A DNA stretch of 63,900 nucleotides, filler included, from Choristocarpus tenellus KU-1152 (Eukaryota > Protista > Phaeophyceae), in NCBI GenBank assembly GCA_964200185.2. It is 8 parts of 8 records of this genome, joined end to end, with 100 filler letters (N's around TTAATTAATTAA, not from the genome) between each part and the next. Parts side by side here need not be neighbours in the genome. Positions count along the whole stretch, not along the records: positions 28,180 to 37,989 come from CAXNAD020003373.1; 7 more parts are not named here. The stretch is one strand, 5' to 3'. The translations under genes and the position numbers were made by a program. The notes under the pieces are model-generated. The model worked only from the letters and a program-made list of their open reading frames with translations, searched no databases and was not told the origin of the DNA. Every line of letters begins with the position of its first letter. Position 1 is the stretch's first letter. Positions 28,180 through 37,989 of this stretch are shown here, one piece after another.

Positions 28180-31100
28180 CAGTCAATTTTGGGTCAAGCC
28201 CATCCTCAGTGAAAAGCTCCATCCTCAATTCTTGAAATCGGCTGTTCACTGCTTGTCAGTCGGTCTCCTCCCTTGAATCATGTACAGGACTCGGCTCGAC
28301 GTTGCCACCTCAATCTTGGTCTGGCGTTTTGCGGTATAGGGACTAATTGGGTAATCGAAAAAAGTTATGTCGTTATTCGAAATAACTGAGCTGATGTCAA
28401 TCGAACTGACCCAATTCACAACACTACAAATAATACCTCACACCTTGGACCAGCTCTGTTGATAGGTCAATATCTATTTTTTTGTTAGGAAGCATAGTAG
28501 AGCTTTTCCATATCACACCCTCTTCCAGGAGGACACATTGTGTGTGATTTGTTCATGCGCTTTCTAGACTCACGACTACAATGGGCCCAAATCATATCAC
28601 TGCGCCTGCCTGGGTAACCCCAGTCGTTGTTGTGCCCTGACTTCCACGCTCAAGGTGCGCATGATCTCTTCAAAATTTCAGAATGCAGGTACCCAGAAAT
28701 ATATTTTAGGAGTACATGGCTTCGCTTGTACCTGGTGATACTACTACTGTCAAATACACAATGGCCATCGAGTATCCCTTGGAAAATTTGTCTTGGTTTG
28801 CAGTCATATGCTTTATCGATCAATGTTCATCGTCTCCCTTCTACTGTTTGCCACTCCTTTCTTGCACTCATTGTTCCCTGTGCGATCACATTCATTAGTG
28901 CTAATAGTGGGTTCTAATGTGTAGGCCGTCATCCTAACGATATAGACTACATTTGCCACCTTCTTCCTCCCACACACAACGGACCACATGAAACTGTCAT
29001 TTGGTGTTTATTTTTTGTGTGTACGGGGGTAAGGATTTCTCCATTCAACTTACCTTTTGGCGCATGGAAAAGTTGGTGACGATAACTGATTGATATCCAC
29101 AAAAAAATAAACCCAACCAGAAGGAAGGACCAAGGCAGAAGTGTGATCTGCTACACTTCATTGTTGTTGCCTTGTTCTTATCTGTACCTGAGTCATTATG
29201 GGGAAATATGACCTTCATTTCTCTCCAACGTGTCCCTTGCAACAACATCCTCTTGGGTTCTTGGTCCTGGCACTTCACTACTTCGTAATCATTTCCTCAT
29301 GCATTGTCGACGGAATTTCACCTACCCAAGGAACTACTTGGTCTCAGCTTAACATATTTGTGACACTCCTGTTCAGGAAAAAATGTTTCCATTGACTACT
29401 CCAGTGTCTTACTTGCACGACCAAAGTGGGATACTGCCAATGCTCCATGACCAGATGAGGTACTGCAGGGTGCAATATTATTATATTATCTTCACTGTTA
29501 TTAATAATGGTTGTTATTTCGTTGTCATTGTTATTATCATCACTGCTATCATCACATAGCCCATGGTCAGTGAGCCACTTCATATTGCAATACTTCTGAT
29601 ACGACTCAACCGTTCACGACTTCTATTCTTGTGTTGCTTTTTGCGAGTTAGGTTCAACCATCTCACCAATTCGCGCTGCCTCCTCTCTCAAGTCTTCTGC
29701 CGGACCCGGATCCGCGGCGCTCCATACAGGAACCTTGCCACCTCTTTGTTGGGTCTCCCGTGTTTTTGCGGTGTAGTAACAGACAGGATAATGTAGATGA
29801 AAAATCCACAGAGTTTGCTGCATGGACTTTGGATTAACTAGAATCACATTTAAAAAAAAGAAGTGTGTTTTGTGTCGATCAGCTTTGGACCCTCAAACTC
29901 CTTCAAGGGAACGCAGCCAATTAATGAATGGGTTACAAGAGCACTGTTCAGTTGTTTACAAGGTCCATCGGTATCGAGTATGAAAGTTTCCTTTCTTTCT
30001 TTTCACCCTCCACCTGTAGGTTCTGGTGATGTTGGCAACGTTGATGATGTCCTATACCAGCTATTGGGTGCTATTACATCATGCCTGGGCTTATCTTGTC
30101 TGTCCTTCTTACTCGCACCGAGCTTTCTTTTTCTTTTGATTCATTTTCCATTTTGTAATTCTTGGAGGACTTGCATTTTCCATTTCCTCAATTACTCTGT
30201 AACGACGTTCCTCCTACCTTTTGACCAGGCTGCTAGGGGTTTAGGACCCCTCAAACTAATATGGAGACACCCATTATTAGTTTTATTGTTAGCACAATGT
30301 TATGAAGAGGCCATGGACCACCCTGTGGCCCAGTTACAATCTTCGATGCCCCTAGACTGGTCATGTTGAGACACATTTCAAGTGGGCCAGCCTGGTGGCC
30401 CGGTCCATTTCAAAATCCTGAAGGTTCTGAATTATACCTGTTTAAATATTTACCGGGGCTAGTTTGCTGCTCAGTTGCGTCACATTTACCTGGTCAATTG
30501 AAAACCCTGATTATTTCTATATGCTCGAAATATACAGTATATTTGAGTCAAACCAATTGAGAGGTAGGCAGGGTTGCATTTCAAGGAGATTAAGAGAAAG
30601 GGTAAAAATACGTCTTTTGTAAATTGCGGAAGAGTCTTTGCTTAGTTGGGATGTCAGTCTGTGTGTGGAAAAGGGGAACATACATTTTGCGTACATTATT
30701 GTGCATACAAAGAAAGTTGACTTAGAATGCAAAAGGGTTGAACCCTGCGTACCTTTCAATTGGGTTGCTCTTCTATTCATTTTGGTTGGGATAAGTGATA
30801 GAACTAGAAAAATATAAGTATATATTATGATATAAATATAGCATTAAAATAGAGGGTCTTTTGAATAAGAGTTACAAACCTGACTCCCCAAATGACCTCC
30901 TTGCTCGAACAAGTCCTTACGTCCCAACCTTGGCACCAACAAAACACCACGATTTACATGAAGTATTGAGGAGTAGGCGAGACCGTAAGATACACAACAT
31001 AGGCACTGCTGGGATAGACACCATGACATCTCAAGTTGATAGGATGCGCTTGTTCAATATGTTTCCCTACCGTGCCAACCTCAGTGCTATCCCTAAATAA

Positions 31101-32323
31101 AATGCCCTCCCACAGTCCAACAGGTGAAATAAACACTGCACCTTTTTCATGGGTCAACGACTGATCTGAGGATTCCCGATTTCTGTCAGCAGAACATGAG
31201 GGAGTACGTATGGTGGTTTGAAGCCAAATGCTGATGGTGCAAGTTAAACCCAAACTCAGTCAATGCTCTCTTCATAGAGAGTCACACTGTGTCCCTGACC
31301 AAAACCCACACAATTTATTCCACCACTCCCAGCCTTTTATCTTCTGCGCAAACTCACCCAAACAAGCTATCTCTGGAACTGGTCAAGAATTTATCCTTCT
31401 GCAATAGCTCCCAGACCTGGCACTAAGCTTGTTAAATGTGTAAAGGATGGTTTGACTCAGCGGCACTGGTGCCACCTACTTTTTACACCTTCCGCCATAG
31501 TCGTACTACTCCCTTACTAGGATTTTGAAGCTGCGTGCTCACTCTACCTTGTCCAATTCCGGCAATGGGAACCTAGGCAATTTTCAGACATTGCATACGC
31601 CACATATATAGAGAATAAGATGCTTGACCTTGGTATGCTTTTATTAGTGTAACCACCTCAGGCAACACTCGAAAGAATGATTGCAAAGCAGTGCACATGG
31701 GAGAAGGGAACGCCAGTTACTATAAGCATTGAAATAGTGTCTATCTCTCTGAAGTACCTTGAAGAAGAGTGGAGACTCAAGTCTCTTGAGGTAGAGAAGG
31801 ATCAATCTCTCCTACCCATCACTTCAAAAGCTTCCTACGCACACGTTCAAGGTTTTAAGCATATTTATACTGAGTGTATGAGGAAACCTGAGCAGCAAGT
31901 GCATGTTTCCACGATGAGGGGAATAACAAGTGACAACCAAGGACAACTTCATTATGGTAAAAAACTCAGGAACTCTTGACTACTTTGTAGTGATAAAAAC
32001 TTTATCCTAAACATTTACAGTGCCATTGACCACAGTACCAAAGTGAACTATGCTAGGATCCTTGTGCGTGGCACGGTTGAACCAGCAATGTTTTTTTGGT
32101 GATCAGACACACGTGGCAATATGCATCTAGGCAGAATCTGAGCCACTGCCTAGTCACTTGTGTGTGGTGATAGAATCAAAATGCTATAAAGCTAAGTATA
32201 TGAGGACTGCCTTTTCTTACTACTACATACACAGACACAGTGGCCACAATTTGAAGTGCTATAGAAACCCTACATCACGAAGTCCACGTTTCAAAAAATT
32301 ACTCTCACTGTACTGTCTTGTGA

Positions 32324-35300
32324 TTATGCCCGCTCAAACAGCACCAAATGCTCTGTTCTCATTTTTCGTCGTGCTCCACCACCTCCACGTAGTGTGGCCG
32401 ATCCCAATATCCTGAGCCCCACTTCCCCTGACCTATCAAGAGCATCCACGGCTTCCAGCAGACTGTTTAAAGTGTCTATACCTCCTCCGTCACCTATCAT
32501 CACTGCCATACGCCCACCTCCTGGACGAAGTGCTAACGCTGTTGCTCCTAGCCATGCCCTCTGATCCTCTGCCCAACGTCCAGCATAGTCCATAGCCCCT
32601 GGGGAGCATGAAGTTTTCCGCTGTTTTTGAAATGAGGACTTTCCCCCCATTTCACCCTCCCTCCACATGTCAGGCCAATCACGCCCTGCCGGAACTTCAG
32701 TTGTAAGGAATGTCTTCTCTCCTCTACAGTGTGACAGCCCTTGCCAGCCTGTACCGAATATCTCAGCCCCTGCCCGAGGTCCTACACACAAACTGGTGTC
32801 CAGTGCTCTCTCAGTGTGGTCTAGTTGTAAGGGCTGATGGCGAATCCTGGGCTTACCTTCAAGAGCACATTGGCTATCCATGTCACCATTCCCATCTTTC
32901 AACATTGAAACCCTCTTGCCTGTACCTCCAACACTATCTTCATGCCCATCCTCAAGCACCATTGGAAGCTCCCCTAGGAGCGCTCTAACGCTCCTTGCAT
33001 AACCAAGATAGTCATACACTCCTGGATATGGGGGAGATGTCAGCACAGCATCCACCCACCCTCGTTCCACATTTGTTTGCCCTTTACCCTCGCTCTTTAA
33101 GGTATTCCAGCCAGGTGGGGGGTGGGGTACCCTAAGAAAGCGAGCATCACCACTCAAGTGGAAGGCTTTAACCTTGGGAAGGTTGTTCACACTGCATCGG
33201 TTTTGATCTGCACTGTAAGAAGCAGCAACGAGGTCTCGAACGGCATGGCAGTACTGCTGACATATCTTTCACACAAAGACAAGCAAGTAGGGGAGTGTCA
33301 AAGAGAGTCCTTGGATTCAGGGTGAAATCTATTCAGGGTGAAATCTACTCCTTGAAGTAGAATAGCAGTGGCAGTGACAAGCTACATCCTTTGGTGGATG
33401 ATGCACATGAAAGCAATCAGGAGAAGGGGACCAGCAGATATATTAGTGTAGGAGGTTGGTAAGAACGGCTTTAAGACTTCGTGCATCAACAAGGAGGGGT
33501 TGAGCACACAAAGCAGCATGACTTTACCAACAAGAGTATCAAATGAAAATATTGAAGTTAAAGCTGTTACAAGGAGAAGCAGAGACTGATCCCTCTGAGG
33601 TCATCTCCTCAAAAATACCACACCAGCAGGGAGCCGCCTTGTGGGTTAGGAGCTTGTGAGAAAGAGCTTGATCGGGGTTTCACAGTATAGAATGAAAAGC
33701 CGAGTATTGCTGCCGTAGGAGATTTTGGACTAGCATGGCGGATTGGCACTTGAGCTCATGTGTATCTCTTCAGAGCTTGGTGGTCTTGACTTCAGAATGA
33801 TTGAGCACAAAGTACATGCAACAACTCAGTCCATTTCATGGATTCTACAGAACAAAAATATTGATATTTGAATCAGGGGTTGTGCCACTGTGAGAAAGCT
33901 GTTCAGTACCAGAAAAATGCAGGCAAGGCTAAAAATGCCCGGAAGTGTGTAGACTGTGTCAAGTAATGACATCAGCTGGACAAAGCAAGTCACGTAACAC
34001 CTTGTAAATCCACCATAAAATACCCACCATATCACCAACTAAACCTTTTAACACCTTACTAAACTGCATGAGTGTCATCGTGCCAAAGAATACCTTGACC
34101 AGTTAGCGCTTCCTCGTCCTTGGTCACCTTATTGAGTGCATGTATTACCATGGAATAAATTGAAAATCAGTAGTCCTACCTGTACTGCCCAAAGACAGGA
34201 GTGTTCCAAAACCAAACAGGGGAGCATTTGGGAATTTGAAACACAGCAAGTTGAGCACAATGGATGCTACGTATCAGGTAATATGTATAGAAAGGAGTTT
34301 TACCAAGACGGCCCTAGATGTTGCTATAAACCAAACTGTGGATAGTAGTGTGACTGTTGTCAGATGTTCTCACAGAGTGTGAACAAAACACCTGAGAAGA
34401 AAGAAAAAATGTGCACATGGGTGGAAGGACACCAGCTACAATGCAAGCCAGTCAGCCTCCCTGAGAAGCATCCAGCCATTACTGATTACATTTGAGAAAG
34501 TGTGTACAAAAACACCTAGAATGGCACTCCCCTCCTCCTCTACTACTACTACAAAAAGAAGAGATTGTTGGAAGGGGAGACAGAATGAAAACCTTCCCTT
34601 CACCTTTCTTCATTAGGAGGTCCCTGGGCTATGTGCTCTCATCGCAAAGGCCAATCAGATGTATGTAATGCACTGTCAAAGCAAGACCTTGTGCAGAGAG
34701 TGCTTCTTCAGAGATCCTCTTTGTCATCAAAGCAACATCCCTTATGTTAAGCTCTACCCTGCCTCTCTCTCTCCTCTTTCATCTCACATATTTGAAGAAT
34801 TCCGCTGGGAGGATCTGCCTTCGATGCCGAGCCTTTGCTGCCCTGGTCTTGGCACACGAAAATAAAAACCAAAGAGGATGCTCCAGCCAGGCCCGCTCAA
34901 CATGTCCCACACCTGACAATCTGCACAGTTAGTTTTTTTGAACTGGTTGCTGCCGTATCAATGGGAAGGAAAATGAGCATTTATTGCAATGAGAAAAAAA
35001 GCCACCGGATGGGCAGACAGTGCAGAAGAAAAAAAACAACTGTTGATGGTACAAGGAAAAAAATAGTATCATCAATTGTTAACCTCACAAGTCAAAATGC
35101 CCCATTCACCAAAGTTATCACTATTTAAAATGCAGTGCACCGATGTGTAAAAAACATATTTCTTGAAGTTTCTCTGCATACTACTATGAACAGAAGACAG
35201 GTACAAAGCAGATCGCTTACTTTTTTATATTCTTACAGCCTGTCCACATTACTCCATGATATCTCCTTCCTTGAATGAGTTTTTTTTCTCCTTTCCAATC

Positions 35301-37842
35301 AGTTCAATTGCTATGTGATAGAGTGAAATGTGTGAAATTAAGGGGTTGTGGACAGCATCAATCAATCTGAACCGAAAATGAAAGAGATTTGCCTCACGGT
35401 TGATGTGATTTCATGCTCAACCATCACAGTCACAGACAAGAACTCATCATATATATATAGCCTACAGTACCATCTGGGCATCCTTTGGACAATTCTACAA
35501 AAAGTGAGTTTGTGAAGGAGAGTGGGTCCTCAGAAGAAGAGGATGACGATTTTTGCTACACTGTAGTCAATTGATGAAGGCATTGAAGGAGGGTAAGATT
35601 TCACACATCTAAGGTTAGTCTATCAACAAGACAAGCTTAGTTAGTCGAGGGAGGTGACCTGTGGATGATTTTGAGCGACATCAATTATTAAACAATTTTG
35701 TGTATTCACCTATCACTGAAGTTGTAATCGCCACAGTCCTGTAGGTGTGGCACAACGATTATTAGAGCAGTTAAATTTGAAATCCCCCAGTGTAACTGTG
35801 CACTTTACGGGCTTGCTACACACATTCACAATAGTGGTAACAGAACATACTTCAAACAAGGCATTCCCCTATTTAATCGAAACATCCCAACAGAGTTATG
35901 TTTGTAGACAAAAGACAGAGCATGCTATTAGACACCAACAAACCCCACACACCTCCATGCACACTTACTATTTCCTACTGCCGTAGAGTTGTCAGGAACA
36001 CCATACGTGACGAGATGGGAGGAAGGTACCTTTGAGATGAAGAGCAACAGATATCTTGACCAACTCCCACGACTTCGAGGTGCACTTCCACCAGCTGTCT
36101 TTATGGTCACCCTTGCTCACATTCAGCATATTTGTACCTTCCTCCTCAGTAGCTTCTGCTATTGCACACACTGCCTGGATCCACAGAACAACAAGCCATA
36201 CTCATTGAACAATGGGACTTTCACAAGTACACAGTGTTTATTGAATGCCGGCTCAGTGCTTACAAGTGTATTTGATTGAGAGTACAAAGCCAACTATATC
36301 GAGAGACCCCACACAATATAAGTATAATAACCCAGGCCAGAAATAACAGTTTTTGAAAGCTTCAGTCGAATGCCCCCCAGGGACCATGCAATGGTGCAGC
36401 ACCTGTACGTGAGACTTGAACCTGCACTGAACATGTTCTCAACTCTGATTCGTGTAACCCTTTGCTGCCAGAATTTCTCACTCAAATCAATTTTTTGTTC
36501 TTGATTGATGTTGTGTGTACATGTAGATAGCATTTCTTATACGCATACAGCAAAATTTGAATGCAGATCATGCTGCAAATTTTCGATGATGAGGAAGTGG
36601 ACATCTTCCATCTATTACTGTACTTGAAAGCATTACCACTGGAGCAGTACACAGCAGTAGCACACCATGTGTACACCCTAGGGGAGTTGGATGTAAGAGA
36701 TGGTGATTCCCATGCCGAAATGGGCAAGTAATACAGGATTTGGGAGCTGGAGGCACTAAAGGCAATCTGCCCATTGGTGCACCATCAGAACTAACAAAAA
36801 TTAGGGTTTTTAAGCATTAGGAGAAAAAGGAAGCTACTGCAGTCCTAATGTTTCAAATTTTGGGAACAGAACTAGATGTTTGAGATTTGCACTTCAGACA
36901 ACATCTGACTTGCATGCAACTTCCATAATCTCAGCCATTATCGATGTGAGTATATATATTGGGAGATACAGATCACACACTAGAATGAAACAAACCTGCT
37001 ACAAGGAAGTAGTGCAACACGCATAAGTGCATATCATGGACACCACATAACCATAAATACACATACACACACACCACAGGCCTTGCAAAATAGTGGCACA
37101 ATATTCTCAGTTCAATGTAACTCATTTCCATAGACAACACACATATTGCAGCTAGTAATTGTGATGAAATATTTTATACCCGCATCCTGATCTGCCCTTC
37201 AAGGCAAGGAAGATATAACTCCAAGTACCCCGAGGCTAAGTCACAATGAACCATATACTTTGAAGTACCTGGAATAAGTCCAGATTACCTCATATCTCCT
37301 GGCGATCCATGCACAGTACAAGGATGGATATTTCCACCACTAGCACTCATGTCAAACTGAAAGGAGTACAAGAGACCTTGATCCAGGTGAGTGAACCCTT
37401 AACATTTCCGTTACTGCCAAGTAAATTCACTCTTGCTCTACTACAACAACACACTGAACAAATATTTTTTGAAGTACTTCCAATGGCACAGTCACTTACC
37501 TACATGCCCTTCCTCCTTCTCCAACACATATATCTCCCAACATATACTTAGACCCAGCACTCAGCGGTAATTAGTCATTAATTGAGACTTAGGAATAGGG
37601 TAGTCAGAATGCTATTTGGGTGCTGTCACTCTCAACCCTGGAAGGTGACATATCTACCTCACGTAAGGGCACAAGTCAATAGGTCTCCTTCACCTGCTCC
37701 AGAACCTTTAGCTGTTCCTCGGATGCAAGCCATGTTCTCCCTCTGGAGACAAAGAGAGCCAATGGGCTAATGTCAATCCCCACAGCTGACCGCCCAGCTC
37801 GCAGGGCCTCCACCAAGACCGTCCCACCACCAACGAAGGGAT
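32324..37842 (-). CDS. Spliced bacterial-type SAM-dependent amino-methyltransferase with N4-cytosine (SPPY) signature and alpha motif order; 5' exon(s) missing
   Basis: Exons 37842-37694 (DPFVGGGTVLVEALRAGRSAVGIDISPLAL), 36174-36030, 34912-34788 (HPLWFLFS...EFFKY) and 33265-32324 (GDAR...VDAVLTSPPYPGVYDY...ALALRPGGGRMAVMIGD...TEHLVLFERA*). All introns are GT-AG with compatible phases; ~450 aa with no internal stop. Confidence 0.85.
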
Positions 37843-37989
37843 CTGTTCACCGATGAAATAGATTGAGAAGCACAATACCAGGGAGGTTTGGTAGTGCACG
37901 GGAAAGGAAGGGGGGTGGGTGGGGGTAGGTAATGTGTGGCACAGCATCAGACACCAGGAAACCAAGACAATCAGAACTATGTGTCAGAA

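Follow-up and report, generated by a model that had tools for sequence, protein, structure and literature searches.

Amino-methyltransferases carrying a [DNS]PP[YF] motif activate an exocyclic amine, and a serine at the first position of this motif marks the N4-cytosine enzymes (PMC4738411, PMC8885841). Eukaryotic examples include the bdelloid N4CMT (PMC8885841) and the Marchantia DN4MT1 (10.1101/2021.02.12.428880), which are permuted or beta-type, lineage-restricted and methylate nuclear DNA, with N4CMT possessing in addition a chromodomain. Iyer, Zhang and Aravind (2016) delineated a further set, group-1 clade 5, of unpermuted enzymes with a strand-4 Ser in distantly related photosynthetic eukaryotes, some fused to PPR modules, with prokaryotic kin in EcoRII-like restriction-modification (R-M) systems and a predicted activity of N4-cytosine methylation in RNA (PMC4738411). 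A 2026 census found brown algae to be without DNA methyltransferases except for DNMT2 homologues, and reported N4-methylcytosine in DNA (4mC) at background in Schizocladia, with plastid DNA used as the comparison (PMC13076208). Here we describe an intron-containing SPPY methyltransferase gene of the brown alga Choristocarpus tenellus KU-1152 (assembly GCA_964200185.2), found on the minus strand at positions 32324–37842 of a 63,900-nt window composed of eight joined parts of this genome. The gene is a new member of the predicted kind, and its family fits clade 5 as compared by description rather than by accession, sharing the unpermuted domain, the motif IV Ser, a distribution over distant algae and the PPR-fused members. 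Clade 5 was described from unicellular algae, whereas C. tenellus is multicellular, and the nearest bacterial kin of the algal family are solitary Myxococcota genes, whereas Iyer et al. tie myxobacterial kinship to the permuted clade 2. We tentatively read the enzyme as a writer of N4-methylcytosine (m4C) in organellar RNA, a reading to which we give somewhat less than even chances.

The gene lies on a piece spanning 28180–37989 of the window (GC ∼43%), and three public sequencing runs, all from one study (X1, X2 and X3), contain the stretch. For comparison, the brown-algal-type loci L001 and L002 and loci of Hapterophycus, Ectocarpus and the xanthophyte Tribonema were read alongside. In order of transcription, the features are as follows.

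37989–37843, minus strand: 3′ part of another intron, upstream of which the remaining exons (motif X, presequence) lie past the edge of the piece.
37842–37694, minus strand: exon of 149 nt starting in phase 1, with motif I DPFVGGGT (the S-adenosylmethionine (SAM)-binding loop) and motif II GIDISP (37780–37763); its acceptor has the same position in L001, L002, L091, Ectocarpus L094 and Tribonema L085.
37693–36175, minus strand: GT-AG intron of 1519 nt, phase 0, at a position common to the other brown algae read.
36174–36030, minus strand: exon of 145 nt, the start of a helical insert between motifs I–III and IV, a putative substrate-recognition region.
36029–34913, minus strand: GT-AG intron of 1117 nt, phase 1, apparently absent in L001 and L002 (one exon there).
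34912–34788, minus strand: exon of 125 nt, covering the LWF helix conserved in the insert, together with a basic patch, KARHRR (Tribonema alignment E 3e-6).
34787–33266, minus strand: GT-AG intron of 1522 nt, phase 0; L001 and L002 appear to have the same position.
33265–32324, minus strand: last exon of 313 codons plus stop, with the GDAR strand, the TSPPY motif IV (33040–33026), the family tail PGVYDYL, LRPGG (32530–32516), MIGD (32500–32489) and RTEH (32359–32348).
32323–31748, minus strand: probable 3′ untranslated region; an X3 contig spans 32100–33265 plus 352 further letters, so that the end at 31748 presumes colinearity.

The initial annotation had joined three minus-strand exons to the last one in phase to give ∼450 residues, and this model holds, with the start of the last exon at 33265 now supplied. 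The four exons comprise 453 codons with zero stops, each has an AG acceptor and the first three a GT donor, and translation exon by exon (start phases 1, 0, 1 and 0) gives a single open frame. DPFVGGGT, GIDISP, VLTSPPY, LRPGG and MIGD are all present as annotated; the Asp of motif I, the codon of which is split by the upstream intron, precedes the Ser of motif IV by 216 residues (∼215 in the annotation), which places the protein in the unpermuted, alpha order with an N4-cytosine-type TSPPY. In X3, all three joints are found, flanked by GT..AG, at 37693/36173 (cut +1), 36028/34910 (cut +2) and 34788/33265, in exact agreement with the model, and depth is ∼38–83 in exon bins versus 0–23 in intron bins. 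X1 (a single flat contig) and X2 (flat pieces) cover the stretch without joints, and X1 may be the source DNA. As the kind of run is absent from the record, it is the exon-biased depth and the spliced joints that indicate that X3 is probably an RNA run and the gene expressed; with this qualification, spliced transcripts of the annotated exons are present. The X3 joints rule out an acceptor at 33212 that looks better by sequence, as well as a candidate extra exon near 34390. The N-terminus lies past the contig end, as had been proposed: a spliced X3 contig (record 18, 752 nt) extends ∼455 nt beyond the first visible exon into upstream exons, and its 30 visible upstream letters encode residues like those of the pre-motif-I exon of other brown algae. 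The deposited NCBI model of C. tenellus, P0001 (388 residues), has an identical last exon; the four-exon model is the better one because P0001 begins at an internal Met in exon 36174–36030 and thereby misses the motif I exon and all exons further upstream. Protein models of Ectocarpus and Hapterophycus also look 5′-truncated, and such truncation may explain why censuses miss the family.

The presence of spliceosomal introns had been taken to argue for a domesticated host gene rather than bacterial contamination, and the comparative evidence is in agreement. The motif I Asp codon is interrupted by an intron at the same base in L001, L002, Hapterophycus, Ectocarpus sp. 8 and Tribonema minus, and the donor following the motif I exon is common to all brown algae read. 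Within the motif I exon (one exon, 49 codons), the proportion of nonsynonymous differences (pN) is 0.08–0.21 versus a saturated synonymous proportion (pS) of 0.61–0.80, which is the opposite of the neutral pattern that had been named as contrary evidence. A contaminant, a pseudogene or a retrocopy artefact might be suspected on the grounds that the run with joints lacks an RNA label and that all three runs stem from a single study; given GT-AG introns at sites common to other brown algae (one of them also in Tribonema), the pN/pS values above, and the sister grouping of the window sequence with Ectocarpus (100/95), we regard the chance of any such artefact as negligible. Sequence comparison supports an old, domesticated nuclear gene of bacterial origin under purifying selection.

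The initial annotation had pictured a rare case akin to the bdelloid N4CMT, and this part did not survive the wider search. With single exons and the natural full-length relatives P0033, P0344, P0052 and P0340 as queries, the family was found in at least six algal lineages and in hundreds of copies. Around 25 further brown-algal-type last-exon open reading frames (ORFs) share 35–46% identity; the named heterokont relatives are Tribonema, Phaeothamnion, Ectocarpus and Hapterophycus, and prasinophytes, haptophytes, chlorarachniophytes and dinoflagellates are represented by Prasinococcus, Cymbomonas, Norrisiella, Amorphochlora, Chrysochromulina, Symbiodinium and Effrenium. All named eukaryotic carriers are algae, and many of the marine-metagenome members are, to judge from their sequences, presumably Mamiellales. 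The bacterial relatives are chiefly metagenome-assembled genomes (MAGs) of Myxococcota, with at least 389 confirmed stretches in GTDB; one of these MAGs, DATJZP01, has two paralogues on separate contigs (L072 and L077). The gene has Myxococcota-like neighbours in a number of GTDB records that bear the names Klebsiella, Enterobacterales or Bifidobacterium (L026, L030, L042, L054, L055 and others), and these deposited names are probably wrong. A search of a phage database, with viral contigs outside the scan, gave no match. Motifs held across the family are motif X THxFHxYPA, DPFxGxG, the insert, DAR, TSPPYPxVYDY, GGR..IGD and a terminal RxEH; the full-length members inspected have motif I ahead of motif IV, as in the window gene, and motif IV reads TSPPY or SSPPY in 386 of 401 relatives. 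The variants are TGPPY (six proteins, of which P0435 and P0436 were read, both PPR-fused) and TSCPY (nine, including the Ostreococcus-like P0293), and possibly denote changed specificity or lost activity.

A maximum likelihood tree (LG+G4, rooted on R-M-type genes; support given without an approximately unbiased test) was calculated in which some rows are labelled by sequence type and the window is represented by its last-exon fragment. A single clade (100/99), nested among bacterial genes, unites the 30 named or presumed eukaryotic sequences; within it the window exon takes its place next to Ectocarpus and the branching among algal groups is without resolution. The sister of the algal clade (100/100) is a short bacterial subgroup, to which P0069, a sequence with the name Myxococcota, is closely related. 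The subgroup itself (P0047, P0048, P0095 and P0231) is ∼310 residues long with a reduced insert. An earlier FastTree placement of the brown algae was distorted by non-overlapping fragments and is superseded by this tree.

In its AlphaFold model (pLDDT 95), a bacterial member folds as an unpermuted Rossmann methyltransferase, in which ∼130 mostly helical residues are inserted behind strand 2. The closest solved folds are the tRNA m2G enzymes Trm11, Trm14 and TrmN (Z 17–19, root-mean-square deviation 2.2–2.9 over 165–178 residues), and in the Foldseek ranking Trm11 and E. coli Dam stand nearly level. Weak PF01170 matches of the family are a further likeness to the tRNA enzymes. The folds raise the alternative that another amine is methylated, namely N2 of guanine or N6 of adenine in RNA, in the manner of Trm11/Trm14, or a group on a protein or small molecule; the TGPPY and TSCPY variants into which motif IV has drifted, and the repeated switching between 4mC and N6-methyladenine (6mA) specificity among such enzymes (PMC8885841), point the same way. 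However, the Trm11 match covers the Rossmann core only, with no solved alpha-class N4-cytosine enzyme among the results as competitor, NCBIfam models of Trm11/Trm14 type score 12–33 bits against cut-offs of 280–480, and a THUMP domain is absent from the full-length family members and the bacterial-member model. The large insert and a nearly invariant motif IV Ser, SPPY instead of DPPY or NPPY, further separate the family from these enzymes, such that we consider a different amine unlikely, though worth keeping in mind.

Over the whole chain, the matches are to DNA methylases. TM scores are 0.83–0.86 against Atlas models of bacterial N4/N6 DNA methylases (0.82 against a Chlorophyta cluster), and the top PADLOC profiles are Type II DNA methylases (MTase_II), with P0340 matching at full length and up to E 3e-34. 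Pfam and NCBIfam gave no match with the last exon alone, and weak DUF4379 and Herpes_UL16 matches on exon 36174–36030 were judged to be chance. Likeness to the alpha-class N4-cytosine methylases of Type II R-M systems (M.MvaI/M.PspGI type) extends to the motif order, motif X of TH-F-H-Y-P-A type (seen in relatives), TSPPY and the large insert between motifs III and IV. Distant plasmid relatives, also with SPPY, reside in methylase–methylase–PLD nuclease operons, whereas the Myxococcota genes do not; P0340 shares 26–31% identity with the R-M-type genes. The neighbours of these outer relatives are PLD-family nucleases, and no EcoRII-like nuclease was seen near them. No restriction nuclease was detected among 114 ORFs adjacent to the gene in 81 bacterial loci, where Tim44-like, GNAT, DUF2505, MazG, sigma factor and TrkA genes recur, nor among the selected ORFs scanned in the window piece, in keeping with the lack of a visible restriction partner in the initial annotation. 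In five of the bacterial loci (L078–L082, e.g. L078:854–2005) the gene lies directly behind a same-strand THUMP/RlmL-type RNA methyltransferase. Because of the PADLOC and whole-chain matches, the methylase–PLD operons of the outer relatives and the solitary Myxococcota genes, we infer that the lineage goes back to R-M DNA methylases and had become solitary prior to its entry into the algae.

Such an ancestry leaves room for a solitary, site-specific 4mC writer that, in the manner of an orphan bacterial methylase, targets the plastid (or mitochondrial) genome. To this reading belong the full-length P0340 and whole-chain Atlas matches and the nuclease operons of the outer relatives, as do the position of the insert, which sits where alpha-class enzymes hold their target-recognition region, and the fact that orphan DNA methylases are likewise without a nuclease neighbour. 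Against it, the fusions observed in the family are of RNA type, and nanopore 4mC in Schizocladia plastids is <5% and was read as background (PMC13076208), although a rare site would escape such a measurement and Schizocladia is not an established carrier. We therefore consider organellar DNA the strongest single rival, yet improbable. Taken over plastid and nuclear DNA together, an active DNA 4mC writer, that is, an overlooked alpha-class site-specific system, is somewhat less improbable but still doubtful.

The features of the algal relatives that depart from Type II R-M methylases, apart from the missing nuclease partner, are their presequences and RNA-binding fusions. Full-length relatives have N-terminal extensions of ∼40–150 residues, which, judged by eye from hydropathy and charge, comprise a signal peptide with a Phe motif in P0344 of Tribonema gayanum as well as in P0112 and P0044, leaders of bipartite type in two chlorarachniophytes and Ser/Ala/Arg-rich transit-type leaders in prasinophytes, and so appear to be of plastid type. 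A PPR fusion occurs within the algal clade in seven proteins of a dinoflagellate branch (including P0197, P0199, P0220, P0235, P0435 and P0436), and CCCH fingers occur in four proteins of a second, separate subclade, with a weak CysS_C match in one. P0150 shows a VTT domain fusion, and in the P0153/P0394 cluster the long member P0394 has a C-terminal class I methyltransferase domain; each is possibly a gene-model join. Chromatin-reader fusions (chromo, PHD or similar) were absent from the relatives scanned, consistent with the lack of a reader domain in the annotated gene.

Because the relatives have presequences and RNA-binding fusions, plastid location and RNA are preferred over nuclear DNA, and the most likely target, as far as sequence can tell, is cytosine in chloroplast RNA (or chloroplast DNA) and not the nuclear genome. 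The initial annotation had allowed nuclear DNA, organellar DNA or RNA as substrate; of these, the latter two are the likelier. A nuclear epigenetic 4mC writer, as in the bdelloid and Marchantia cases, would share the SPPY motif and the bacterial origin, and could operate in a lineage with lost 5-methylcytosine writers, DNMT1/3/5 being lacking in brown algae (PMC13076208); the N-terminus of the C. tenellus copy is unseen, and its basic patch could serve as a nuclear signal. As in N4CMT and DN4MT1, the SPPY enzyme is horizontally acquired, with spliceosomal introns (shown for N4CMT). The class nevertheless differs, as N4CMT has a permuted (beta) domain and a chromodomain, and the enzymes with which DN4MT1 was aligned are of beta class, whereas the present gene is alpha-type, pan-algal and probably organellar. 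With no reader domain and organelle-type presequences among its relatives, and with nuclear 4mC at background in Schizocladia (PMC13076208), a nuclear epigenetic role is unlikely, and decidedly more so than any of the other substrates.

In the favoured reading of an organellar m4C RNA writer, the nuclear gene would encode a SAM-dependent amino-methyltransferase whose elements run, unpermuted, as X-I-II-III-(helical insert)-IV-VIII, and an N-terminal presequence would direct its import into the plastid (or mitochondrion). SAM would be bound at DPFxGxG; within the TSPPY pocket, the exocyclic N4 amine of the incoming cytosine is predicted to be polarised by Ser and by the carbonyl of Pro. The m4C would then be written at one or a few sites of organellar rRNA, tRNA or mRNA, with the site chosen by the insert and, in some relatives, by PPR or CCCH modules as well. 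The enzyme would have passed from R-M DNA methylases to a solitary Myxococcota gene, thence by a single entry into algae, and subsequently have spread among plastid-bearing groups. Besides the presequences and the RNA-binding fusions, this reading draws on the confinement of the named eukaryotic carriers to algae, the lack of chromatin-reader fusions among the relatives scanned, the missing restriction nuclease and the five THUMP RNA methylases next to the bacterial genes, the prevalence of TSPPY or SSPPY as motif IV, and the N4-cytosine-in-RNA prediction that Iyer et al. made for a clade of matching features (PMC4738411).

Several points weigh against an organellar RNA substrate. At full length it is DNA methylases, as above, that match best in both sequence and model. 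The m4C of plastid 16S rRNA is already served by an RsmH-type writer, so that a second site is needed. The presequence calls on relatives were made by eye, the C. tenellus presequence lies beyond the contig, and a first exon sought in the brown-algal loci L001, L002, L091 and L094 was not found. The visible part of the brown-algal gene has no RNA-binding fusion, and PPR-like repeats and CCCH fingers in relatives fall short of proving an RNA substrate. A limited literature search found no paper assaying a family member.

Elsewhere on the piece, a perfect 16-nt tandem duplication with no evident meaning lies at 33315–33346 in the last intron, 50 nt ahead of the acceptor. Two intronic differences from the sequencing runs, an A instead of G at 33381 (all three runs) and an extra T at 37532 (two runs), are either alleles or assembly errors. 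No repeats of note were found in the window, and six ORFs downstream of the gene (28180–31700) gave no Pfam match of note; this region is probably intergenic or degraded repeat DNA.

The window gene is one among hundreds of copies, and some relatives are already auto-annotated as cytosine-N4 methyltransferases. The supplements of the brown-algal census (PMC13076208) contain no mention of the family under the terms searched. If the substrate is DNA, the claim that DNA methyltransferases are missing from brown algae (PMC13076208) would need amending, and plastid DNA could not be relied on as the unmethylated reference in calling 4mC; an active DNA 4mC writer would, moreover, be a system independent of the rotifer and liverwort cases. 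Orthologues in Ectocarpus and prasinophytes make a test of the substrate practical. If the substrate is RNA, an R-M-derived enzyme would have been recruited across algae to modify organellar RNA, as predicted in 2016, and would constitute a second family of m4C-RNA writers beside RsmH.

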